A stretch of 64,000 nt of DNA, from sequence record NC_061450.1; one strand, written 5' to 3'. This document shows positions 9,737 through 32,157 of the stretch, one piece after another. How positions within the stretch are numbered: position 1 is the first letter of the stretch; each line of letters begins with the position of its first letter. A program made the position numbers and the translations under genes. The notes under the pieces were generated by a model, which did no database searches, was not told the origin of the DNA, and saw nothing but the letters and a program-made list of their open reading frames with translations.

Positions 9737-10273
9737 GTGATTCGTGAGCCACAAGAAATTGAACGCATCAGCCAGCAGTATGTTCAGACTCGCATCAAGA
9801 TGTGGATGACCTATGCCACAACCGTCTACACAATGGGCGTCCGACAGCTTCCTATTGAGTACCAGCAGATCATTGCTGCGTATAAGTTTGCAGCAGGACG
9901 CAGACGGCAGGAAGAAATGCATCAAGACCTACTACAGGCTTTTGATGCCTACGCCTTTATCGACAAGCGATTCACCCCACAGCATTACAATGATTTTGTG
10001 TTTGACCCTGAAATCAAAATCTATGCTGCGGCCATGTGTAAAAACTTCTTTGAAGTCAACATGCTGATGACGTTCCTGTACCTAAAGAACTGCCGCACGT
10101 TCAAAGACATGTGCCTCAAACATCTTCCAAACGGCTATCCTGATACCAGCACGCTCCACATGTGTTGGGACCAGCAAAAGTCAGATGAGCCTGAACACCG
10201 GGGTGAGATTAATCTGATCGACAGCATAAATTCTGTAAATAACGTGTATGAATCGCTGTACGGAGTAAAGTAA
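9737..10273 (+). CDS. hypothetical protein
   Basis: GTG start, RBS AGGAG; coupled to next gene. Confidence 0.65.
   Translation: MIREPQEIERISQQYVQTRIKMWMTYATTVYTMGVRQLPIEYQQIIAAYKFAAGRRRQEEMHQDLLQAFDAYAFIDKRFTPQHYNDFVFDPEIKIYAAAMCKNFFEVNMLMTFLYLKNCRTFKDMCLKHLPNGYPDTSTLHMCWDQQKSDEPEHRGEINLIDSINSVNNVYESLYGVK
10233..10241 (+). promoter_or_regulatory. CTGTAAATA putative phage promoter
   Basis: About 30 nt upstream of macrodomain ATG. Confidence 0.55.
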
Positions 10274-10851
10274 TGGATATGTCCGCACTCGGTATTGTTA
10301 AGCAGCATCGCGTGATACCAATAACGGATCGCAATATCACCCGAGACTTCCTGTCTGGTCGCATTAGTGTCATAGGCGTTGAGTGTAATACTCGCGGCGT
10401 GTATGGCAGTCCACTGCAAAAGACACTGGCAGGTCTCTATCCTGCAATGCTGCCACACGTCACACAGCCCTGCCGTGAAAAGCTGGGTACCACTGACATG
10501 TGGCATGTTAAAAGCCGCAACAGTGCTCGTCGTCAGTTTGTTGCCAACATGTATCTGAGCCGTGGCTTTGGTCTTGGGCGCAACAACTTCAACCGCGGTA
10601 CTGAACCGGTGAATCGTTTCAAACGTGAGTTCCTCGAAACAGCCTTTGATAGTCTGATAGAGAATTGCCGTAGAAACAACGTACCACCTGATCGCGCGAT
10701 AGGATTGCAACGCGTGTACGGTGGATTGGGCGGAGTGTCGTGGGCTGAGGTGGTTGAAGTGCTGGATGCCTTGTGTGAAAAACACCAGATCAGCGTATAT
10801 GTCTATCTGCCGAAGAACTACGATACTGCATTTGTCAGAGGTAAGAAATAA
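10273..10851 (+). CDS. macrodomain (ADP-ribose binding/hydrolase, TARG1/DarG-like) protein
   Basis: VECNTRGVYG, FVANMY, AIGLQRVYGGLGGVSWAEV...ISVYVY match macro consensus (IAxPRIGxGLGGLxW). Confidence 0.7.
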   Translation: MDMSALGIVKQHRVIPITDRNITRDFLSGRISVIGVECNTRGVYGSPLQKTLAGLYPAMLPHVTQPCREKLGTTDMWHVKSRNSARRQFVANMYLSRGFGLGRNNFNRGTEPVNRFKREFLETAFDSLIENCRRNNVPPDRAIGLQRVYGGLGGVSWAEVVEVLDALCEKHQISVYVYLPKNYDTAFVRGKK

Positions 10852-11979: not shown

Positions 11980-12042
11980 AATCTGGGAATGGTAATTTCG
12001 GGAGGTCTACTTGATCTCCCTTTTCGTATCTGAGGAACCACA

Positions 12043-12807
12043 ATGAGCAACATTGATAAAACAATGCCACAAGGCAAATGGGAATTTGATGAAAACGTTG
12101 CCTGCGTGTTTGATAACATGCTGCAAAACAGTATTCCAAGCTATGACCGTATGCGTGAGCTTACCCACTTCTTGGGTCGTCGCTTTGTAACTCCAGGCAC
12201 TGCCATAGTTGACCTGGGTGCATCGTTGGGTCGTGCTATCGAGCCGTTTGCTCGTGAGTTTGGTGCGCCTCGTGGTGAGCAGAACGGTGACCATGTTCGT
12301 TCGTGTGGTAACTACTACAGCCTGTATGAAGTAGCTCCTGCCATGCGTGAGCGTCTTGAAAAGAACCCATTGCTCCAAGCAGTGCAGGCCGAACTCAGTG
12401 ACTATAGCCTGACGGATGTTGACTCGTTCAAACTCAACGATGGAAAAATCGATTGTTCGTTGATTCTCAGCGTGTTAACTCTCCAGTTCACGCCCATCGA
12501 ACACCGCCAACACATCCTCGAGACCGTGTATGACTCGCTACAGCCTGGTGGCGCATTCATCTTGGTAGAGAAAGTGTTGGGCGATGACAACTTCCTTGAT
12601 CGTATGCTGGTCGATACCTATTATGGCATGAAAGGCGGCAACGGTTACTCGGCTGAATCTATCGCTGCTAAGCGCAAGTCACTTGAAGGCGTGCTGGTTC
12701 CAGTTAAAGCCGCATGGAATGAAGAACTGTTGCGCAAGACAGGCTTCAAACGTGTTGAGTGTTTCTATCGTGACCTGAATTTCGCAGGCTGGATTGCAGT
12801 CAAATAA
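12043..12807 (+). CDS. cmoA: carboxy-S-adenosylmethionine synthase (CmoA-like)
   Basis: Collinear with E. coli CmoA: WEFDENVACVFDNM, SIPSY, VDLGASLG, LTLQF, LQPGGAFILVEK, NGYS..I..KRxxLE with the conserved Arg, ECFY..LNF. Confidence 0.9.
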   Translation: MSNIDKTMPQGKWEFDENVACVFDNMLQNSIPSYDRMRELTHFLGRRFVTPGTAIVDLGASLGRAIEPFAREFGAPRGEQNGDHVRSCGNYYSLYEVAPAMRERLEKNPLLQAVQAELSDYSLTDVDSFKLNDGKIDCSLILSVLTLQFTPIEHRQHILETVYDSLQPGGAFILVEKVLGDDNFLDRMLVDTYYGMKGGNGYSAESIAAKRKSLEGVLVPVKAAWNEELLRKTGFKRVECFYRDLNFAGWIAVK

Positions 12808-12854
12808 AACCTTCGGTGGCTTATTGCTGCCCCTGTTAGTTTAAGGAAAACCTA

Positions 12855-13736
12855 ATGGCTAACCGTCAACAGCGCTGTGCTCAAATGATACGCGAGTCAC
12901 TAATCAACGAAATCAAAAAGGCTCGCAGCAAACGTCCTTATGTATTCCTCAGCGGTGGAGTTGATTCTAACTGCATCCTGTTTGCAGCACTTGAAGCAGG
13001 CACGCGTCCGATCACGCTTAGCTTCCACATGGAAGGCGTTAACAGCCGTGACTTCCGAGCAGCACAACGCACGGCACAACACTTTGGTCTGGAGTTTATT
13101 GAGGTTGTGTTGCCATCAGATCCAGACCGTCTGAAAAGCGACGTGCTGACAATGGCTGAACGCTATAAGTGCGTGCAGAAAAACGAGTTTGAATGTAGCT
13201 GGCCAATGCTGTACAGCTTCTTCCACGTTAAACGCCATGCAGAAGCCGCAGGTATCAAACGTCCTGTGACGTTCACGGGCCAAGGTGCTGACTTGATGTA
13301 CCTCAGCAGCAAGAAAGCCAGCATTCACTACAAAGATCGTCCTGATGTTTGGCGCAAAGAAGGTCGCGCTAACCCACACCGCACTCAGGGTCGTATCTTA
13401 CCTCTGATGGCTCAAGATGCTGGTGTGCGCAACATCAAGCCTTGGGACAGCGAAGAAATCCTTGATGCGTTTCTTGGCACCAGCTGGGAAGACGTAAACA
13501 AGCCACGCCAGAAAGAACCTTCGCGCATGGCGTTTGAAGATTACTTCCAGCAGATTCGCGTATACAACCATCAAAACTTCCAGCTGGGTGATACCAAGAT
13601 TGCAGAGCACTTTGAGCAACTACTGGATGACCCTAAGTTCAACCCAGATAATCGTTACAAGTCTGTGGTGGGCGTATACAACGAACTCGCACGCCGCTTT
13701 GGCAACGAGATTCCTCAACAAGAAGAAGACGAATAA
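12855..13736 (+). CDS. asparagine-synthetase-like ATP-dependent amide ligase lacking glutaminase domain (CmoY-like candidate)
   Basis: PP-loop FLSGGVDS, DFRAAQRTAQHFG, TFTGQGAD (cf. AsnB SGEGAD); 293 aa with no N-terminal Ntn domain. Confidence 0.8.
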   Translation: MANRQQRCAQMIRESLINEIKKARSKRPYVFLSGGVDSNCILFAALEAGTRPITLSFHMEGVNSRDFRAAQRTAQHFGLEFIEVVLPSDPDRLKSDVLTMAERYKCVQKNEFECSWPMLYSFFHVKRHAEAAGIKRPVTFTGQGADLMYLSSKKASIHYKDRPDVWRKEGRANPHRTQGRILPLMAQDAGVRNIKPWDSEEILDAFLGTSWEDVNKPRQKEPSRMAFEDYFQQIRVYNHQNFQLGDTKIAEHFEQLLDDPKFNPDNRYKSVVGVYNELARRFGNEIPQQEEDE

Positions 13737-14386
13737 TGCTGATTAATATCTTTGACGTCCGCCAGATTGCGGGTCACACAGCAAAACTGCTTGAGCGTGC
13801 AGGCCACACTGTTAACATCCACCAGCCGATGAATCGCATCAGTGATTCAGGGCGTGAGTTTAATCATCCACAGACAATCACCTGCATGGGCGATAGCCTG
13901 AACAGGAAAGATGTGGTTGAACGTGCTTTGACCTACTGTCTGCAAAGCAATCGCGCACTGTGGTTGGTACCCAGCGTTAGCGCCAGTGTTGTGGGTCGTG
14001 ATATGCTTGACCTAGGCGGCAACAGTGAGAACATCATCTTTTGTGAACCGCCTCTGTACAACACGGATAAAATCATTGGCAGCACCTTGACCATTGATTC
14101 TACGCGCCGTGCTCAGCAGATCGCTCGTATTCGCGGCAATGATGTTGGCCATATTTACTCAGAGCTGGTGGCAGATGACGGTCTGATTCACCTGTGTGGA
14201 TTGGCCCTGCAAGACAGCATGTTCCGCGACAATGCACGCATTCGCTTTAAAGAAGCCACAAAAGGTGGAGCGTATCTCGCCAGTAGTGTGCTGGTGGCCT
14301 ATGCCAACTTCTTTGGCTTTACTTCACAACAACGTCCTGACTATGTGCAACTGGTAGCAGACTTTGTGGCCAAAAGGAACGCGTAA
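13736..14386 (+). CDS. hypothetical protein, possible degenerate prephenate-dehydrogenase fold
   Basis: TAATG-coupled to the ligase; QIAGHTAKLLERAGHTVNI, VPSV, CEPPL, GLIH, SS...G...QRP align by eye with TyrA motifs. Confidence 0.45.
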   Translation: MLINIFDVRQIAGHTAKLLERAGHTVNIHQPMNRISDSGREFNHPQTITCMGDSLNRKDVVERALTYCLQSNRALWLVPSVSASVVGRDMLDLGGNSENIIFCEPPLYNTDKIIGSTLTIDSTRRAQQIARIRGNDVGHIYSELVADDGLIHLCGLALQDSMFRDNARIRFKEATKGGAYLASSVLVAYANFFGFTSQQRPDYVQLVADFVAKRNA

Positions 14387-15844: not shown

Positions 15845-16300
15845 ATGAGTCCCTTAGCAATTTTAAAGGCACAGGTTAAACGTTCGTTGGTTGGAGAAGC
15901 CAACTACGATCCCGAAGTACGCGAACTGTTTGATTGGCGATTCGTTGCCAACGTTGGCGGAAAGCAGTATCTGGTTGGCAAGACTGGCGCTAACACCGTG
16001 TACTATCAAACGCCAGACATGGACCAACCCGCTCCGTGTTACCCTTCTGATATTGAAGGTATTATCGATAGTTGGAGCAAGGCCAAATACCTCAGCTTCT
16101 TTATCTGCCATAAAAAGTTTGATAACATCAAGCTGGACAACATCAAGACAATTGAAGATGCTCTCCAGAAGGTTCCAAAGACCTTCCACGACAAGACCTT
16201 CATTGCTGGTGTAACACCAAAAGGCAAGCGTCACAAACTGTATGTGTTGCAGGCGGGCTTGCGTGGCAATACCTGGGTACCGTTGAAGGAGCAGGATTAA
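15845..16300 (+). CDS. hypothetical protein
   Basis: 151-aa ORF. Confidence 0.6.
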   Translation: MSPLAILKAQVKRSLVGEANYDPEVRELFDWRFVANVGGKQYLVGKTGANTVYYQTPDMDQPAPCYPSDIEGIIDSWSKAKYLSFFICHKKFDNIKLDNIKTIEDALQKVPKTFHDKTFIAGVTPKGKRHKLYVLQAGLRGNTWVPLKEQD

Positions 16301-16637: not shown

Positions 16638-16663
16638 AGGGTGGCCCCAGGGCTGCCCTTTTT
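16638..16663 (+). terminator. intrinsic terminator
   Basis: AGGGTGGCC-CCAG-GGCTGCCCT then T-run; near-identical copy at 34850. Confidence 0.7.
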
Positions 16664-16680
16664 CGATCTTGTGCAGAAAT

Positions 16681-16689
16681 CTGTAAATA
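16681..16689 (+). promoter_or_regulatory. CTGTAAATA putative phage promoter upstream of dam
   Basis: Follows terminator, about 26 nt before ATG 16716. Confidence 0.6.
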
Positions 16690-16715
16690 ATATAAAACGA
16701 GCTATAGAGAATACT

Positions 16716-17552
16716 ATGCAGTATATCAGCCCTATTCGATACCAGGGATCGAAGCGTAGCCTTATTCCTGTTATCAAGCAACTTGCACCACAAGACTGCA
16801 CCAACATGATTGACGCCTTTGGTGGTTCGGCAACTGTGGTACTCAACATGGATCATCGACGCCGCATGTACTGCGAGTCATATCAGCCTGTGTTTGAGAT
16901 TGTTGATACTCTGGCTAGTGTTGAACCCCATCGAACAGTCAACAAAGTAAAGCGATTGGTTAAGCGTTGGAAACTGGATAAGCACAGCCCTGACAATTTC
17001 TTTAAATTTCGTGACCACGCCAACAGCAGACGTGACCCATTGATGTTTTATATCTTGCATCGCCATGCACATAGCAACCTGTTGCGTTTCAATCAGGACG
17101 GTGAGTACAACGTACCGTTCGGTAAACGTGGCATAGCGGACAATATGGAAGATGTAGAACGTGAAATCTATACCTTCTTTTATAACATGCAGGACGTGCA
17201 ACGAGTCAACGCACGTTATGGTCAGGTGTTGTTGGACAGCAGGTCTAAACTCAACCACAAGACATTCATTTATTTTGATCCTCCTTATCTGGCCAGTGGT
17301 GCCAACTGCTACGATAGTTGGTCCGAGAAATACGAGCACCAGTTGTTGCGTAATCTTGAACGATTGACCGTGATGGGCGTCAAGTGGATGTTAAGCAACG
17401 TCACCCAGCACAGGCATTTTCGCAACGATGTGCTGATCAAGTGGTTAAAGAAGAATAAAATTCGTGTTGTGTATCCGAACAAGACCTATGCATTGGCTAA
17501 CCTGCACGGTGATAGCCACAGCACTGTAGAAATCATTGCAATGAACTATTGA
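16716..17552 (+). CDS. dam: Dam-family (D12 class) N6-adenine DNA methyltransferase
   Basis: RYQGSK, IDAFGGSATV, FNVPFG-like YNVPFG, FIYFDPPY, WMLSN; start moved from 16641 to 16716 because 16641 lies in the terminator. Confidence 0.88.
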   Translation: MQYISPIRYQGSKRSLIPVIKQLAPQDCTNMIDAFGGSATVVLNMDHRRRMYCESYQPVFEIVDTLASVEPHRTVNKVKRLVKRWKLDKHSPDNFFKFRDHANSRRDPLMFYILHRHAHSNLLRFNQDGEYNVPFGKRGIADNMEDVEREIYTFFYNMQDVQRVNARYGQVLLDSRSKLNHKTFIYFDPPYLASGANCYDSWSEKYEHQLLRNLERLTVMGVKWMLSNVTQHRHFRNDVLIKWLKKNKIRVVYPNKTYALANLHGDSHSTVEIIAMNY

Positions 17553-20042: not shown

Positions 20043-20319
20043 ACAGCTCTTGAAAAAGCTACAGATGGTTGTGAGTTGCCTGGTCAGCCAGATTGAAGCT
20101 CTGGGCATAATGATTGATCACAAAACAGGTGAACTCAATCACGGTGCTTTGGGTCTGACGATAGGCACGCATAGCGTTGAGTATTGCGTTATGCAGATCG
20201 ATGTGCTGCTAGAGATTCGTCAACGTTTCCAGCGTGAACTCGCCGAACTCAACCAAAACTACGAAAGCCACATTAATCTTTGGGCAGATGGTCTACTTAA
20301 CTCTATGGACGTAACATGA
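20032..20319 (+). CDS. hypothetical protein
   Basis: Probable GTG start at 20032. Confidence 0.5.
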   Translation: MENEQLLKKLQMVVSCLVSQIEALGIMIDHKTGELNHGALGLTIGTHSVEYCVMQIDVLLEIRQRFQRELAELNQNYESHINLWADGLLNSMDVT

Positions 20320-20801
20320 ACGAAAAGAAAGCAGTAGCAATCATGGCGGCCCTGTTTGGTCTGGCCACAATCTCCAACAGCCGTCGGCGTAGCTGTGCAG
20401 CCGCAGTAGTGCGTCTTGTTGAAGGCGTGCCTGTGATGATTGCCACAGGCGTTAACGGTACTTCTCCTGGACACGATAATGTGTGTGAGCCAGAAGACCT
20501 CAGCAGTACCTACCCGCACGTCATTCATGCAGAAGATAACTGTCTGCGTCGTTATACGGCGCTGGGTAATATCAGGCCTGACTTGGACATGCTGTTTGTC
20601 ACAGACAGTCCCTGTGCCGCGTGCTTTGACAAGATTATCGCCTCAAATATTCGTCAGGTGTACTATGCGCGTAGTTACCGCATTCAAGACCACTTGCCAC
20701 TGGCTGAACGTCATGGGCTGGAGTTCGTTGAAGTGGACTTGCAGCAGGTGCGCATGAATCTGATTGAAGCCCACCAGCGCATCGATAAAGTGATCAGCTA
20801 A
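20316..20801 (+). CDS. dCMP deaminase (cytidine/deoxycytidylate deaminase family)
   Basis: TGVNG, IHAE, TDSPCAAC zinc motifs. Confidence 0.88.
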   Translation: MNEKKAVAIMAALFGLATISNSRRRSCAAAVVRLVEGVPVMIATGVNGTSPGHDNVCEPEDLSSTYPHVIHAEDNCLRRYTALGNIRPDLDMLFVTDSPCAACFDKIIASNIRQVYYARSYRIQDHLPLAERHGLEFVEVDLQQVRMNLIEAHQRIDKVIS

Positions 20802-25680: not shown

Positions 25681-26336
25681 TGTTTGATAATTGGGATTGG
25701 TCAATTTTCTGGCCTGTATGCTTTTTCGTTTTAGCTATTGCCGGTTACTTCGGTCTGTTGGGATGGTTCGGTGGACGTATGCGTCGCAAACATCAATCAG
25801 AGAGCACTACCAACATCGGTGCCAAGATTCGCACAACGTACAATCTTTGGTACACAAACTCTGTACGTGCAGGTCAAGTATATCGTCACCACAGTGGACG
25901 CGAATACTTGATCGTTAGTATCTTCAATGGCATGTGTGACGATAAAGTCAAATGGCCATTGACTGTTGTATACTGCAATGTCCAAATGACGGCATGGTAT
26001 GCACGCCCACTTTGGCAGTTCCTCGAAGGCTGTCAGCTTAATCGAGAGATCGACAACGATGACTCGATACCACTGATGGACCTTATGGCAATGGCACGCT
26101 TTGATGGCAAAGTCGAAGCAGAGCTACCACAGGCTCAAAGTGTTTGGACACAAGGCGAACCTAGTCAGCCTCACTTGAGAAGGCCAAACGTTGTTGTTAC
26201 ACAGGTCTATAACAAGAATCTGTCTCAACCTATTGTTTCGTATTATGCCATAGGTCGTGAGCACGAGGCACTAGCCTTGCCTCTTTTTGTGTTCCTCAAG
26301 AAATACAGTCCCGTAGCCCAGGAGAAAGCGGCGTGA
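25680..26336 (+). CDS. membrane-anchored DUF1653-like protein
   Basis: TM helix then GQVYRHHSGREY...VVY...WYARP...F. Confidence 0.55.
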   Translation: MFDNWDWSIFWPVCFFVLAIAGYFGLLGWFGGRMRRKHQSESTTNIGAKIRTTYNLWYTNSVRAGQVYRHHSGREYLIVSIFNGMCDDKVKWPLTVVYCNVQMTAWYARPLWQFLEGCQLNREIDNDDSIPLMDLMAMARFDGKVEAELPQAQSVWTQGEPSQPHLRRPNVVVTQVYNKNLSQPIVSYYAIGREHEALALPLFVFLKKYSPVAQEKAA

Positions 26337-27421
26337 GCAAGACATTCGATTTAAAGAACCCACAGCACTTTGCAATGTATCTCATGGAAAGTGTTGATGG
26401 CCAGTACATGCAACTGGTTGAAGCAATTCAGAACTCAGGCACGCTTGAGTTTGACAAGAACCGCACAGAAGATACGTGGCAGACCTTGATTGGTTGTGCC
26501 ATGCAGTTGCACAACACAGCACTGGCGTTCCCTGCGCTGCTCAGCAAGCAAGTAGCATGGAAGCCTGCCGTTGATGAGACGTGCTGGTTCGCTCGTGGTG
26601 AAACCAACATCCGTACTCTCAACAGCAAGATCTGGAATGAGTGGGCAGATGCTGATGGCGAGTGTGGTCCAATCTACGGTGAAATGTGGCGTCGTTGGCC
26701 AGATGTTAAAGTATTGCAACTTCCTAATGCGAACGATGAAAGTCCAGCAGCAGAACGTATCGAGAATGAAGCACAGCGTATGCGCAATGCTGGCTATCGT
26801 GAAACACAACTGCCTGATGGTCGCATGTTGTTTGAAGGTGAGATTGACCAACTGTTGGATGCATTGAATGCCGTGTGTGCGCACTCACGTAGTCGTCGCA
26901 TTAAAGTAGCCACGTATAACCCAGGCTACATTCACATGCAGGCCCTGCCTCCGTGTCACACTAACTTTGAGTTCAACGTGACTCAGGCAACCAACTACGA
27001 ACGCATGGTTGCAGCGGCTGCTGGTCTGCCTGTATATGACAATACTCTGCACCTAACAGCGACCATGAGATCCCAGGACACCCTTTTGGGTAGACCTTTT
27101 AACATCATTGGCTATGCTACGCTGTTGCACTTGTTCGCCAAGTATGCCAAGTTGAACATCGGTGGCTTTACGCTGAACACGACCAACACCCACGTGTATT
27201 CTCATCATTGGGATGCCTTGCGCCAACAGCAGGCACAGTACCAGGAGCTGTTGGAAGAGGTTCGCACTACTGGTCATCCTATGACTTATCCTCAGATGAT
27301 TATCAGTGATGCGATTCACGACATGCAGCCAAAAGAGTTGCTGGACAATCTCAGTCCAGACATGTTTAATCTCGTAGGCTATCAACCCAAGCCTGCCGTT
27401 AAAGGACGCGTAACCAAATGA
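26333..27421 (+). CDS. thyA: thymidylate synthase
   Basis: IWNEW, GPIYGEMWR, SRR, LPPCH, RSQD, GRPFN, HVY. Confidence 0.93.
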   Translation: MSKTFDLKNPQHFAMYLMESVDGQYMQLVEAIQNSGTLEFDKNRTEDTWQTLIGCAMQLHNTALAFPALLSKQVAWKPAVDETCWFARGETNIRTLNSKIWNEWADADGECGPIYGEMWRRWPDVKVLQLPNANDESPAAERIENEAQRMRNAGYRETQLPDGRMLFEGEIDQLLDALNAVCAHSRSRRIKVATYNPGYIHMQALPPCHTNFEFNVTQATNYERMVAAAAGLPVYDNTLHLTATMRSQDTLLGRPFNIIGYATLLHLFAKYAKLNIGGFTLNTTNTHVYSHHWDALRQQQAQYQELLEEVRTTGHPMTYPQMIISDAIHDMQPKELLDNLSPDMFNLVGYQPKPAVKGRVTK

Positions 27422-29349: not shown

Positions 29350-30042
29350 ATGGCACTGAGTAAGGTCAAAAAAGTAAAAGCTAAAAGCAAAGATCGTGGC
29401 GAACTGGCGGTGTCGTTAAAAGATCTGAAACACGTTAAGCAGTTGCGCAGCGCTGGCTACAACCCACGTATGATTACAGACCGTCGTCTGGCAGACCTTG
29501 AAAAGTCTATCGCATCGTTTGGTGACCTGAGTGGCGTTGTGTTTAACAACAGCGTGAAAAGTGGTGTGCTTGTATCAGGCCACCAGCGTCTTAGCTCTAT
29601 CAAGGGTTGGAAGACGCGTGTTCAGGTTGATGCAGCAACTGATGACCACGGCACTGTGGGTGTAGGCTACATCTTTGCTGAAAGCCCTAAAGGCAAGCAG
29701 GTGCAGATTCCACTGCGTGTGGTAAACTGGTCAGATCGTCGTGCTGAGTATGCAGCAAACATTGCAGCCAACGCACACGGCGGTGAGTTCGATAACAAAA
29801 AGCTGGCTCAGTTGGTTGAGAAGTTGGACATGACCAAGATCCCAGCAGAGATTGTTGGTCTGGACCCTTTGATGCTGCGTGGTCTTAAACAGCGTCTCGC
29901 CAAACAGGGTGAAGATCTTGGCAAGCCGACGCGTACTAACGGCACACAAAACGGCGCCAGTGGTCAGTTCAATGAGGCAACGGTTGATGACATTGAATCA
30001 GATACCGTACACAAATGCCCGCGCTGTAACTTTAAGTTCTAA
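29350..30042 (+). CDS. ParB/Srx-like N-terminal domain protein with C-terminal zinc ribbon
   Basis: YNPRMI, LEKSIASFG, VLVSGHQRL, C-terminal HKCPRCNFKF. Confidence 0.8.
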   Translation: MALSKVKKVKAKSKDRGELAVSLKDLKHVKQLRSAGYNPRMITDRRLADLEKSIASFGDLSGVVFNNSVKSGVLVSGHQRLSSIKGWKTRVQVDAATDDHGTVGVGYIFAESPKGKQVQIPLRVVNWSDRRAEYAANIAANAHGGEFDNKKLAQLVEKLDMTKIPAEIVGLDPLMLRGLKQRLAKQGEDLGKPTRTNGTQNGASGQFNEATVDDIESDTVHKCPRCNFKF

Positions 30043-30051
30043 GGAACAGAT

Positions 30052-32157
30052 ATGCTGATCAAACCACCAAAGATGAAAGAGATTAATGACCTGCCGAAGT
30101 TGTGGTCAGGCATGAGTTTCTTTGCAGGCTGCGGTGGTTCCAGCACGGGTCACAAAATGAGTGGTGTCGATATTCTCGTTTCGAATGAGTTTATCGACAT
30201 TGCTCGTGAGACTTACGCTGCGAACCATCCGACGACCAAAGTTCTTGGGCAGGACATTCGTCGTCTTAGTCCAGATAAAATTCTGAAATACTGCGGGCTG
30301 GCAAAAGGTGAGTTGGACTTGCTTGATGGCAGCCCTCCGTGTTTCCTGCGCGATACCCTGATTCATACTCAGCACGGTATGCGCTACATTGATTCGATTG
30401 AAACAGGCGACATGGTAATGACCCACGAAGGTCGTTATCGTCCTGTTGTTCAACCCATGCGCCGCCCATACAGCGGTCCTCTGCATCGTATTCAGTCCAC
30501 AATCGGACAGAACCACGCAACGCCTGAGCATCCTTTCTATGTCAGACGTTTGGTAAACGGTGTATTGAGTGAAGCACAGTGGGTTGACGCTCGTGAGGTT
30601 CGTGCTGGCGACAAAGTTGCTACGCCTATTGCCACGCCGCGTTGTAGCTATGAGCCTGACATTGCTGCCTTGCGCAAGTGGGGAGAAATCCCAGAGTTCT
30701 GGTGGCTGTGCGGTCATTGGGTGTCTAACGGTTTCATCGAAGCTGTTGGCGGCTATGAGGGCATTCGCTTTATCACGCCAAGCAACGGACGTGTTAACCA
30801 GCTCATGGAACAGGCTCTTGAAACTCTGGGCTTCAACACAATTCAGGTTGCCAAGCAAAACACCAGATACATCGAACGCTTTATGCTGGACGATGACCTG
30901 TGTCAGTTCCTCAAGTTGTTCCTGACTGATAACGAAATGGCGCGTCAGATTCAAGGCTGTGTGTTCCACCTTGATATGTACCTCAAGCGTGAGTTTATCT
31001 ACGGCTTTATGTCGCGTTGCTCAGCCACAAGCTACGGCAAAGCGCTGGTGGTTCAAACTCGCACTGAACGCTTTATGACAGGCATGAAATACCTTATTGC
31101 CTCTGCGTTCGGCAGTCCCCTGTTCGACTTGAGTCCCAACGTTACAACGGAAGAGATTCCAGAGAACTGCTTTACGTTCCGCCGCGATCATCCGTTCTAT
31201 CCAAAAGTTCGTTACACTGCGGTGTTCTATCTGGATGACACTCATCGCGGTTATATCGATGATGAGTCTGCCCACGTGTGGGTTGACGTGTTGGCCAACG
31301 AAGTGTCCGAAGTTGATACAGAGGTGTTTAACTTCTCAGTTGATACGGACGAGACGTACATTGCCAACAACACTGTGGTGCACAACTGCAAAGGCTTTTC
31401 TACTGCAGGTGTGAAGGAAGATGGCTGGGGCAAAGAGGTCAAGTACAGCGACAACGTTTATCAGCAGGTTGATGACCTGTTTGATGAGTTCTGCCGTATG
31501 CTGGGTGGCATGATGCCCAAGGTGTTCACAGCGGAGAATGTTAGCGGTCTGACTAAAGGCATGTCGAAAGGGTACTTCCTGGAAATCATGGCAACGTTTG
31601 ATGCGCTTGGCTATCATGTTCGTGCACCAATGTTGAACAGTAGCTGGCTGGGTGTTCCGCAATCGCGTGAGCGTATCATCTTTATGGGTGTGCGCAAAGA
31701 CATTGCCAAGAAACTCAAACTGCCGGCAAACAGCACCTGTGTGCCAAGTGTTATTCCGCACAAAACACAGACCATGCTGGCAGATGCACTGCCTCACATT
31801 GCAGCCTACAAGTCCACGCAACAGGATTTGATCAAGTACAAGCCTGCAATGAACGGACCCATGCCGACCATCACAGCGGCTGATGCTATTGCCTATGAAA
31901 CAGCGCGGTTCTCATCTGCTGGGTTTATTGAACTGCTTGATGGTACCCGACGCAAGCTGACCATCAATGAACTGCTGGTGGTTAGTGGCATGCCAAGTGA
32001 TTACAAGCTGCTTGGCAAGTTTGAAGAACAATGGGAACGTCTTGGTCGTGTGTGCGTGCCAGCAATGACGCACAACGCATCAAAGGTTTTGATTGAGCAC
32101 ATCTTGATCCCTTACTGCAATGCGATGAAGAAGCGGCCTGGAGAGATTTTCCGATAG
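30052..32157 (+). CDS. C5-cytosine DNA methyltransferase homologue, predicted carboxymethyltransferase (CmoX-like), intein-containing
   Basis: Motifs FAGCGG, GSPP|C, ENV, PQSRER, RKLTINE; motif X reads ERLGRVCVP instead of Q.GNSV.P; spliced length 352 aa. Confidence 0.85.
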   Translation: MLIKPPKMKEINDLPKLWSGMSFFAGCGGSSTGHKMSGVDILVSNEFIDIARETYAANHPTTKVLGQDIRRLSPDKILKYCGLAKGELDLLDGSPPCFLRDTLIHTQHGMRYIDSIETGDMVMTHEGRYRPVVQPMRRPYSGPLHRIQSTIGQNHATPEHPFYVRRLVNGVLSEAQWVDAREVRAGDKVATPIATPRCSYEPDIAALRKWGEIPEFWWLCGHWVSNGFIEAVGGYEGIRFITPSNGRVNQLMEQALETLGFNTIQVAKQNTRYIERFMLDDDLCQFLKLFLTDNEMARQIQGCVFHLDMYLKREFIYGFMSRCSATSYGKALVVQTRTERFMTGMKYLIASAFGSPLFDLSPNVTTEEIPENCFTFRRDHPFYPKVRYTAVFYLDDTHRGYIDDESAHVWVDVLANEVSEVDTEVFNFSVDTDETYIANNTVVHNCKGFSTAGVKEDGWGKEVKYSDNVYQQVDDLFDEFCRMLGGMMPKVFTAENVSGLTKGMSKGYFLEIMATFDALGYHVRAPMLNSSWLGVPQSRERIIFMGVRKDIAKKLKLPANSTCVPSVIPHKTQTMLADALPHIAAYKSTQQDLIKYKPAMNGPMPTITAADAIAYETARFSSAGFIELLDGTRRKLTINELLVVSGMPSDYKLLGKFEEQWERLGRVCVPAMTHNASKVLIEHILIPYCNAMKKRPGEIFR
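30340..31386 (+). mobile_element. intein (349 aa) with LAGLIDADG-type endonuclease remnant
   Basis: Begins CFLRDT, block B ATPEHPFY, WLCGHWVSNG and FIYGFMSRCS remnants, ends VVHN before Cys. Confidence 0.92.

Follow-up and report, generated by a model that had tools for sequence, protein, structure and literature searches.

A putative CmoY-type amide ligase in an exchangeable gene cassette of the Erwinia jumbo phage pEa_SNUABM_5

The ligase gene gp015 and its relationship to CmoY

The stretch of DNA analyzed here, 64,000 nucleotides in length and in the following referred to as the window, is identical (100%) to bases 1-64000 of Erwinia phage pEa_SNUABM_5, a jumbo phage of Erwinia amylovora with a genome of 267 kb which belongs to Rivsvirus. 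The subject of this study is its gene gp015 (12855..13736, + strand), a homologue of cmoY that starts with ATG, encodes 293 amino acids and carries the label 'putative asparagine synthetase' in GenBank. A Shine-Dalgarno sequence (AAGGA) is located 9 nt before its start codon, and its stop codon TAA overlaps with the ATG of gp016 (TAATG). The cmoA homologue gp014 (12043..12807, +), a candidate synthase of carboxy-S-adenosylmethionine (Cx-SAM), lies 47 bp upstream of gp015, and a cmoX homologue, gp046 (30052..32157, +), which is a candidate C5-cytosine carboxymethyltransferase containing an intein, is found further downstream. In the context of these genes gp015 quite probably encodes a CmoY-type, ATP-dependent amide ligase that would act on the phage DNA after replication, and glycine should not be assumed to be the amine which it attaches.

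The pathway formed by CmoA, CmoX and CmoY was recently described for the Synechococcus phage S-B43 (Yang et al., Nat Commun, December 2025; PMC12783734). There, the phage CmoA produces Cx-SAM, and CmoX, a homologue of C5-methyltransferases, uses it for the carboxymethylation of cytosine in GC sites of DNA, which leads to 5-carboxymethylcytosine (5cxmC). CmoY, a homologue of asparagine synthetases, then ligates glycine to 5cxmC in an ATP-dependent reaction with 5gcxmC as the product; the published m/z of the nucleoside is 286.1 for 5cxmdC and 343.1 for its glycine amide. The carboxylate of Cx-SAM is bound by an active-site arginine of CmoX, R350, which together with an SPPC motif defines CmoX candidates (PMC12783734). 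The same authors surveyed 2,251 associated ligases and distinguished the cluster of the S-B43 enzyme (SpCmoY), one whose ligases are fused to a glutaminase, and others with 'distinct active site residues', and left the amines of the remaining clusters as a question for identification (PMC12783734). gp015 belongs to this known family, and the question of other amines has thereby already been raised by its discoverers. Neither Erwinia nor the Pseudomonas phage PaBG is named in the text and source data of that study, and a search for further literature on CmoX, CmoY or 5cxmC in phages yielded none. The paper on PaBG classes the ligase gene of this phage merely as an enzyme of amino-acid metabolism.

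A BLASTP comparison of gp015 with SpCmoY (A0A514ABJ0) revealed 34% identity (E 1e-38; residues 30-287 against 21-270), and the match was also found by tblastn (E 7e-30). Both proteins consist of a stand-alone synthetase domain of about 270-290 amino acids that contains a PP-loop and the motif GxGAD, both have equivalents of K109, E113, R167, K220 and H239 of gp015, both are encoded beside cmoA, and both genomes hold a CmoX with the Cx-SAM-binding arginine. They differ in that the isoleucine of SpCmoY is replaced by glutamine at residue 143 of gp015, in a 9-residue insertion (127-135) and a longer N-terminal helix of gp015, and in the position of cmoX, which is adjacent in the system of SpCmoY and 16 kb off in pEa_SNUABM_5. 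An apparent further difference, Q178 in gp015 against glycine in SpCmoY, vanished in a larger alignment and was dropped.

With regard to its motifs, gp015 contains the ATP pyrophosphatase motif SGGVDS (residues 33-38, nt 12951..12968, +), the PP-loop, in which S33, G35, D37 and S38 do not vary among 174 family members and which aligns with the SGG(L/I)DS of AsnB and beta-lactam synthetase (BLS). In the TGQGAD motif (residues 141-146, nt 13275..13292, +), G142 and D146 are invariant within the family, and Q143 aligns with E348 of AsnB and Y348 of BLS (hidden Markov model (HMM) alignment, 1CT9/1JGT). AsnB Glu348 and BLS Tyr348 adjoin the attacking amine. Further towards the C-terminus follow a predicted lid loop (H239-Q-N-F-Q-L-G-D246-T-K-I, nt 13569..13601, +), in which H239 stands opposite K443 of BLS in the alignment, a residue that we take to be the counterpart of AsnB K449, and the signature Y268-K-S270-V-V-G273-V-Y275-N276 (nt 13656..13682, +), which the family alignment assigns to the type II ligases described below. 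As gp015 keeps every residue that is invariant across the family (S33, G35, D37, S38, S64, D66, A70, K109, E113, C114, P117, G142, D146, R167, P196, N215, P217, K220 and Q243, with H239 being nearly invariant), it looks like an active enzyme. The protein ends with an acidic tail (..PQQEEDE, residues 287-293, nt 13713-13733) that is predicted to be disordered and occurs in none of the relatives.

Pfam Asn_synthase matches residues 23-160 of gp015 (E 1.8e-10), PHROG 26038 matches the protein with E 3.9e-64, and a search of 1.8 billion representatives with a family profile built from 20 relatives matched 346 clusters (50% identity) at E<1e-30. The initial annotation had noted SGGVDS and TGQGAD in a protein without a glutamine amidotransferase (GATase) domain. 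This description was borne out, as both motifs could be located and the profile aligns solely to about 207-413 of AsnB and 224-469 of BLS. No GATase Pfam model matches gp015, the annotation of bases 1-90000 lists no glutamine amidotransferase, and a crude scan of the window for open reading frames of the N-terminal nucleophile (Ntn) type beginning with 'MCG...' yielded none. The initial annotation had also proposed that the basic helix IKKARSKR (residues 20-27) and the segments KASIHYK (154-160) and WRK (166-168) contact DNA. Neither proposal found support. Residues 20-27 are not conserved even among the closest relatives (clade A, see below) and correspond to the helix that in AsnB and BLS leads into the PP-loop. 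KASIHYK..WRK lies within a motif common to the whole family, SpCmoY included (LSKKxxxHYKDR...R). It aligns after the SGEGSDE of AsnB and is more likely to belong to the active-site architecture than to be a special DNA-binding add-on.

The AlphaFold2 model of gp015 has a mean predicted local distance difference test score (pLDDT) of 94.2 and a predicted template modelling (TM) score of 0.91. Its best matches among solved structures (Foldseek) are the C-terminal synthetase domains of BLS, E. coli AsnB, human ASNS, CarA and TsnB9, with E-values from 1.6e-9 to 1e-5 and TM-scores on the query of 0.52-0.71. In BFVD one strong match was found, a viral protein of 271 amino acids and thus of the length of SpCmoY (E 7.8e-18, TM 0.83/0.90). 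A search of solved structures with the single gp015 sequence was only marginal (E 0.16), so that a profile was required, and residues of gp015 were placed on AsnB and BLS through HMM alignments. With the synthetase domain of AsnB and ASNS (1CT9, 6GQ3, 8SUE; Foldseek E 7e-9 to 4e-8, TM about 0.6-0.7) gp015 shares the fold, the PP-loop and the GxGxD Mg/ribose motif and, by analogy, would share the acyl-adenylate chemistry. However, the identity is only 17-21%, gp015 is devoid of the N-terminal Ntn glutaminase domain, and E348 and K449 of AsnB are replaced by Gln (Q143) and His (H239), a correspondence that follows from the HMM alignment only. Moreover, the acyl substrate of AsnB and ASNS is free aspartate, whereas that of gp015 would, by homology to SpCmoY, be a DNA base. 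BLS (1JGT, 1MBZ, 1MC1; Foldseek E 1.6e-9) and CarA (1Q15) are the top structural and profile matches of gp015 and are themselves AsnB-derived enzymes which no longer produce asparagine. Unlike gp015, they close an intramolecular lactam and retain a dead N-terminal domain, and the catalytic residues Y348, E382 and K443 of BLS are not conserved in gp015.

Partner genes and gene linkage

The initial annotation had placed gp015 next to cmoA, and gp014 indeed proved to be a CmoA homologue. It shares 30% identity with the assayed SpCmoA (E 7e-29), aligns over its full length with E. coli CmoA (4GEK, E 1.2e-30) including the ...NGYS...KR segment, and matches the NCBIfam CmoA model TIGR00740 with E 5e-42. 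Within the group of Erwinia, Dickeya and Yersinia jumbo phages CmoA is 68-97% identical, with values of 70-79% for gp014. A hairpin rich in G+C, with TTTT behind it, was observed between gp013 and cmoA (12000-12020). It may end the upstream transcript, in which case cmoA, cmoY and gp016 would start a new unit. Scans for promoters and terminators gave site counts at chance level, and this hairpin was the one site worth noting.

Comparison of gp046 with SpCmoX resulted in two BLASTP blocks (E 2e-24 and 6e-34) that are separated by about 350 residues. As the 'ERLGRVCVP' of gp046 stands opposite the 'ERVGRMVPP' of SpCmoX, R666 corresponds to the diagnostic R350. Besides DNA_methylase (E 1.4e-34), the Pfam models Hint_2, PT-HINT and Intein_splicing match the protein. 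The intein (30340..31386, +; residues 97-445, 349 residues) separates ..DGSPP from the catalytic cysteine of the SPPC motif. It begins with Cys97 (CFLRDTLI) and ends with VVHN445, and the catalytic Cys446 that follows is at the same time the +1 splice residue, so that the SPPC motif would be regained once the intein is removed. Long, intein-containing versions of CmoX are also encoded by Yoloswag (702 amino acids) and pEa_SNUABM_2 (709 amino acids), while the CmoX of PaBG (335 amino acids) is free of an intein. The C-extein is 68-87% identical over the phage group. As the intein interrupts the catalytic loop of CmoX, the modification of the DNA in these phages would depend on protein splicing.

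Directly upstream of cmoX lies gp045 (29350..30042, +), which matches the ParB-like family PHROG 620 (E 1.1e-29). Homologues with 42-48% identity precede cmoX in PaBG and in the contigs L011, L022 and L024, and an association with ParBc was noted for many CmoX contigs (PMC12783734). As ParB-like proteins have been reported to activate phage DNA dioxygenases on double-stranded DNA (PMC13229309, 2026), gp045 may by analogy activate CmoX on duplex DNA.

Adenylation of the 5cxmC carboxylate, for which the initial annotation had considered gp015 to be the obvious enzyme, is the best reading of the homology to SpCmoY, of the neighboring cmoA and of a CmoX with the diagnostic arginine. In the reaction sequence that can be proposed, gp014 would convert S-adenosylmethionine and prephenate to Cx-SAM, and gp046, with its intein spliced out and probably aided by gp045, would transfer the carboxymethyl group onto C5 of cytosine, which would lead to 5cxmC. 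The PP-loop of gp015 would bind ATP, the carboxylate of 5cxmC would be adenylated under release of pyrophosphate, and a free amine would attack the acyl-adenylate, with the amide and AMP as products. From the comparisons presented here we infer the activity of gp015, its DNA substrate in pEa_SNUABM_5 and its choice of amine alike.

This assignment is well supported by the homology, the gene context and also by gene fusions. The ligase genes of relatives adjoin a C5 DNA methylase and/or cmoA in nine metagenomic contexts, most commonly in the order ParB-CmoX-CmoY-CmoA. Three metagenomic proteins (P0036, P0043, P0074) are fusions of a C5 methylase with the ligase, and the methylase part of P0036 and P0043 carries the PPC and the ER.GR motif-X arginine of CmoX. 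This constant linkage to, and occasional fusion with, CmoX-type genes makes it very unlikely that the ligase acts as an asparagine synthetase on free aspartate. Two further proteins (P0141, P0106) join the ligase to a domain that weakly resembles uracil-DNA glycosylases (22 and 20 bits, below the cutoff). In one phage contig a chorismate mutase gene (CM_2, L012:4670-4939) is located just upstream of cmoX-cmoY-cmoA; its product would provide CmoA with the co-substrate prephenate.

The gene gp016 (13736..14386, +) is translationally coupled to cmoY. Its homologues (24-34% identity) occur in 40 phage records and are always located at the 3' edge of the ligase slot described below. Neither a Pfam, NCBIfam or PHROG family nor a relative of solved structure was found for gp016, and its ESM Atlas model is poor, with unreliable matches. 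Weak collinear hhalign matches to MurI-like accessory proteins (probability 36% for the N-terminal and 68% for the C-terminal part), with serine in gp016 where the racemase has cysteine, give a hint of a degenerate racemase fold. The idea of gp016 being a dedicated partner of cmoY was dropped, as it is unlike the gene that follows cmoY in PaBG, belongs to no family and is present whatever the type of the cassette. Being conserved regardless of the cassette type, it is treated here as the 3' flank.

Another gene that recurs beside cmoA is gp022 (phrog_23597; 15845..16300, +; 151 amino acids). Its homologues directly follow cmoA in L011, L022 and L024, which are unrelated metagenomic operons, and lie between cmoA and cmoY in PaBG, so that gp022 may be a further, fifth component of the Cmo module. 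Neither a family nor a fold match was obtained for it (AlphaFold2 pLDDT 62), an Atlas search gave no lead, and the homologues that were retrieved are all close ones. Other genes of nucleotide or DNA metabolism in the window are those of a D12-class N6-adenine DNA methylase (16641-17552, Pfam E 4.5e-23), of an annotated dCMP deaminase (20316-20801) and of a thymidylate synthase with insertions (26333-27421; 362 amino acids, TIGR03284 129 bits, above the cutoff). A macro-domain-like protein, annotated as Appr-1-p processing, is encoded at 10273-10851.

Ligase types and the exchangeable cassette

A tree of 174 stand-alone ligases places gp015 in a clade of 27 sequences (clade A, support 0.95), together with the ligases of Yersinia phage fHe-Yen9-02 (52% identity) and PaBG (44%). 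SpCmoY, with 33% identity, is 3.9 substitutions per site away from gp015 on this tree. After the addition of 118 close relatives of SpCmoY, the resulting alignment of 292 sequences splits the family into two almost exclusive signatures. Type I (about 132 sequences) comprises SpCmoY, the only family member that was assayed, as well as the ligases of Alexandra, AD1 and SNU1. Type II (about 133 sequences) comprises gp015, the ligases of Yen9-02, PaBG, Yoloswag and Y3, those of several metagenomic operons and the CmoX-CmoY fusions. The C-terminal motif of type I is R251-K-R253-x-M255-D256...D260 in the numbering of SpCmoY; Y56, G127 and G130 are further conserved, and the lid loop is without an acidic residue. 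In type II, the C-terminal motif reads (Y/F)268-K-(S/A)270, G273, Y275-N276 in the numbering of gp015, and the lid loop contains an inserted G245-D246 ('QLGD(S/T)G'), with D246 being located seven residues past H239.

Seven residues show a conservation of 93% or more in the clade of SpCmoY (119 sequences), namely Y56, G127 and G130 and, from the invariant R-x-R...M-D motif, R251, R253, M255 and D256. gp015 has none of them and carries R65, L147, L150, Y268, S270, V272 and G273 instead. Arg65, which takes the place of the tyrosine of SpCmoY, is present in 24 of the 27 clade A sequences. Residue 143 is histidine in 16 and glutamine in six of them, gp015 included, and mostly leucine or isoleucine elsewhere in the family. 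From the position of the type I and type II signature residues in the alignment and from their clade-wise conservation we infer that they line the amine pocket.

In pEa_SNUABM_5 the slot between the stop codon of cmoA and the start of gp016 (12808..13735, +) holds cmoY alone. A ligase gene is present at the same position in all 48 related Erwinia phage records as well as in the relatives from Dickeya and Yersinia, yet the content of the slot differs. As in pEa_SNUABM_5, SNU2, SNU30, SNU35, SNU36, SNU39 and phB78 contain only a ligase, which is 84% identical to gp015. In fHe-Yen9-02 and a metagenomic phage of 265 kb a type II ligase (52-56% identity) is accompanied by a glutamate-racemase-like gene, and in Yoloswag and Y3 another type II ligase (31-34%) is found together with a 2-oxoglutarate(2OG)-Fe(II) oxygenase. 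Alexandra and AD1 have a DgcN-like gene (DUF1611) and a type I ligase (24-27%), and pEa_SNUABM_1 and its relatives a gene for a 420-amino-acid protein, a DUF1611 (DgcN-like) gene, an alanine-racemase-like gene and a type I ligase. The ligase types that are exchanged in this slot are unrelated (24-35% identity).

The relationship of the ligases does not follow that of the genes around them. Between SNU2 and Alexandra the flanking genes are 75-97% identical, whereas the ligases share 26%. Conversely, the flanking genes of pEa_SNUABM_5 and SNU2 are 26-79% identical at a ligase identity of 84%, and those of Y3 and Yoloswag 37-70% at 89%. The DNA sequences of SNU2 and Alexandra match with 85-89% identity as far as the stop codon of cmoA, and this match resumes about 12 nt into the gp016-like gene, while the DNA within the slot (920 bp vs 1940 bp) is unrelated. 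No meaningful repeats flanking the cassette were found. As neither the backbone genes nor the backbone DNA follow the ligase, the ligase and its accessory genes form a cassette that is exchanged horizontally while its slot stays fixed. Such a pattern would be expected if the cassettes confer different modifications that are under selection, and it is hard to square with one common base. That sister jumbo phages carry different cytosine hypermodifications, some of them possibly based on D-amino acids from racemase-like enzymes of the phages, and that the amine of gp015 is not glycine and its product a new base, is regarded by us as having about an even chance of being correct.

The amine of gp015 and competing explanations

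The accessory genes beside ligases of both types encode amino-acid enzymes, several of which are linked to D-amino acids. In three phage contexts (L004:6858-7427, L019:4852-5454, L021:4183-4728) the gene immediately behind a type II ligase encodes a MurI-like protein (182-201 amino acids). Their matches to TIGR00067 (Yen9-02 E 1.7e-6, L019 1.5e-5, L021 2.9e-18) are all below the cutoff; the L021 copy keeps both catalytic cysteine motifs (ACNTAS, GCTH), and the other two have serine at the second. This suggests a supply of D-amino acids to the ligase in these three contexts, whereas the window contains no gene of this kind. DgcN-like proteins accompany both ligase types, with strong matches to the NCBIfam model of the D-glutamate N-acetyltransferase DgcN in L007 (E 6e-84) and L022 (E 8e-106) and a match only to Pfam DUF1611 (E 7e-49) in L009. 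Other cassettes contain an N-terminal domain similar to Alr/VanT (alanine/serine-racemase-like), a 2OG-Fe(II) oxygenase or pyridoxal phosphate (PLP) enzymes, which are either of the D-cysteine-desulfhydrase/1-aminocyclopropane-1-carboxylate-deaminase type or weakly typed. These DgcN-like, racemase-like, oxygenase and PLP genes are found at L007:2486-3538, L009:1530-3502, L022:2949-4001, L006:4529-5164 and L011:6872-7996. As the accessory genes are those of amino-acid enzymes, amino acids are favored as the general class of substrates.

For gp015 itself, which has neither a glutaminase domain nor an accessory gene in its cassette, the amine would have to be a common metabolite of the host. Should gp015 indeed act as a ligase on 5cxmC, an alpha-amino acid different from glycine appears as the leading candidate, albeit a tentative one, ahead of glycine, which we consider possible but doubtful; ammonia would be unlikely, another amine more unlikely still, and a reaction without any external amine very hard to envisage. 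Within the amino acids other than glycine, an acidic one (Glu or Asp) is our leading guess, since the clade has Arg65 and Arg280 and since glutamate-racemase-like genes follow the closest relatives. At residues 36, 143-144, 150-151 and 176-180 gp015 departs from this racemase-linked sister group, and it therefore need not share its amine.

Among the explanations that compete with a CmoY-type ligase whose amine need not be glycine, the use of glycine carries the most weight, although we regard it as rather unlikely. The base of the virion would then be 5gcxmC as in S-B43, and nothing would be chemically new. Glycine is the substrate of the only characterized family member, and several clusters besides that of SpCmoY retain carboxylate-binding residues (PMC12783734). 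It is also abundant and needs no accessory gene, which fits the minimal cassette of pEa_SNUABM_5, and the family-wide basic residues are common to gp015 and SpCmoY. On the other hand, gp015 is distant from SpCmoY in both identity and tree position, it is devoid of all seven clade-specific residues of SpCmoY, R251 and R253 among them, and has an additional aspartate in the lid loop, and the exchange of ligase types among near-identical phages would be hard to explain if all of them made one base. The suggestion of the initial annotation that the attached group may differ from glycine is plausible: the R-x-R...M-D signature is indeed absent from gp015, while the role of this signature in the amine pocket is assumed from alignments.

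Ligation of free ammonia, which would yield 5-carbamoylmethylcytosine, appears improbable, even though AsnB synthetase domains are known from textbook enzymology to accept free NH3. The lid loop of type II keeps an acidic residue similar to that of AsnB (QLGD(S/T)G vs FSDGVG), the residue aligned with AsnB E348 is a polar one, His or Gln, in clade A, and a cassette without an accessory gene would suffice for this reaction. The glutaminase-fused cluster (A0A7T0Q3R0) would offer a precedent, since it also combines an AsnB-type synthetase domain with CmoA and CmoX and is predicted to use glutamine-derived ammonia (PMC12783734). It possesses an Ntn glutaminase domain, however, whereas gp015 has no such domain and no partner of this kind was found among the annotated genes nearby. 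Furthermore, the MurI-like, PLP and DgcN-like genes of close type II relatives would be pointless if ammonia were the substrate, and the clade-specific Arg65 together with Arg280 suggests an anionic group on the substrate.

Still less probable is an amine that carries no alpha-carboxylate, for example ethanolamine, putrescine or a different polyamine, and that would result in a neutral or cationic side chain. The change from two invariant arginines in type I to an invariant aspartate in the lid loop of type II reverses the charge and would suit a cationic substrate, and pyrimidines bearing polyamines, for example diaminopropane-thymine, are known from phage DNA. Yet the genes that accompany type II relatives speak for amino acids, Arg65 is again specific for the clade, and no gene of a polyamine pathway is located in the vicinity.

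We consider it very improbable that gp015 does not act on DNA at all and is an auxiliary asparagine synthetase, as its GenBank label would have it, or a PP-loop enzyme with a role elsewhere, for example a QueC-like enzyme or one in tRNA modification, as weak N-terminal matches to QueC, LarE and NadE models might indicate. The asparagine synthetase model TIGR01536 (asn_synth_AEB) reaches only 34.2 bits at a cutoff of 267.1, and the position of the AsnB E348 is occupied by glutamine in a protein without a glutaminase domain. The match to Pfam QueC (22.4 bits) covers model positions 4-61 of 210 only, that is, the third with the PP-loop, and TIGR00364 (QueC) scores 21 bits at a cutoff of 150. Such a role also disagrees with the linkage to C5 DNA methylases and cmoA described above and with the homologue SpCmoY acting on DNA in vitro (PMC12783734). 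Finally, an attack of the cytosine N4 on the adenylate, through which a five-membered lactam and a bicyclic pyrrolo-pyrimidinone base would arise, would fit the lactam-forming best structural matches BLS and CarA, the N4-C4-C5-CH2-C(=O) geometry that on chemical grounds favors a five-membered ring, and a minimal cassette that requires no amine supply, but is extremely improbable as SpCmoY makes an intermolecular amide (PMC12783734), the cytosine N4 is only weakly nucleophilic, the similar scores of BLS, AsnB and ASNS make the fold rank uninformative on the chemistry, and Y348 and K443 of BLS are Gln and His in gp015.

Several points nevertheless weigh against the reading of gp015 as a CmoY-type ligase whose amine need not be glycine. 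The match of gp014 to TIGR00740 (144 bits) stays below the cutoff of 193 bits, cmoX is located far from cmoA and cmoY, and the activity of CmoX requires splicing. A literature search on pEa_SNUABM_5, Yoloswag, Y3, AD1, Alexandra, PaBG and fHe-Yen9-02 found no work on DNA modification in these phages. As to the amine, the role of the signature residues in the pocket follows from the alignment with the AsnB and BLS loops and from clade-wise conservation only. The basic residues K153, K154, H158, K160, R167, K216, K220 and R224 are common to gp015 and SpCmoY, which leaves room for glycine, and fully so if these residues bind the glycine carboxylate. The cassette of gp015 itself contains no racemase or other accessory gene, as is the case in most type II contexts, and the preference for Glu or Asp draws on relatives of 52-56% identity that differ from gp015 at residues 143-144 and 176-180.

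A CmoY-type ligation of amines to 5cxmC would resemble the hypermodification of thymidine in other phages, where N-alpha-glycinylthymidine is reportedly made by aGPT-Pplase/gp46-gp47 systems. There, too, an amino acid is placed on a C5 substituent of a pyrimidine after replication, with variable tailoring enzymes. The enzymes are, however, unrelated to that of gp015, and the handle is a (pyro)phosphorylated hydroxymethyl group to which the amine is joined by a C-N bond, whereas the route proposed for gp015 would proceed by an adenylated carboxylate to an amide bond.

Should 5gcxmC prove to be the product, gp015 would simply be one more CmoY. What is new is the placement of gp015 in type II, the recognition of the ligase as a precisely bounded, exchangeable cassette and the conserved intein in the catalytic loop of CmoX. 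pEa_SNUABM_5 and its about 40 sequenced and cultivable relatives from Erwinia amylovora, Dickeya and Yersinia constitute a natural panel of phages with a nearly uniform backbone and differing cassettes. This panel bears on enzymes that place chosen groups on DNA, on the choice of phages for the biocontrol of fire blight which escape the defenses of the host, and on the arms race between phages and their hosts, that is, on restriction and modification-dependent defense.

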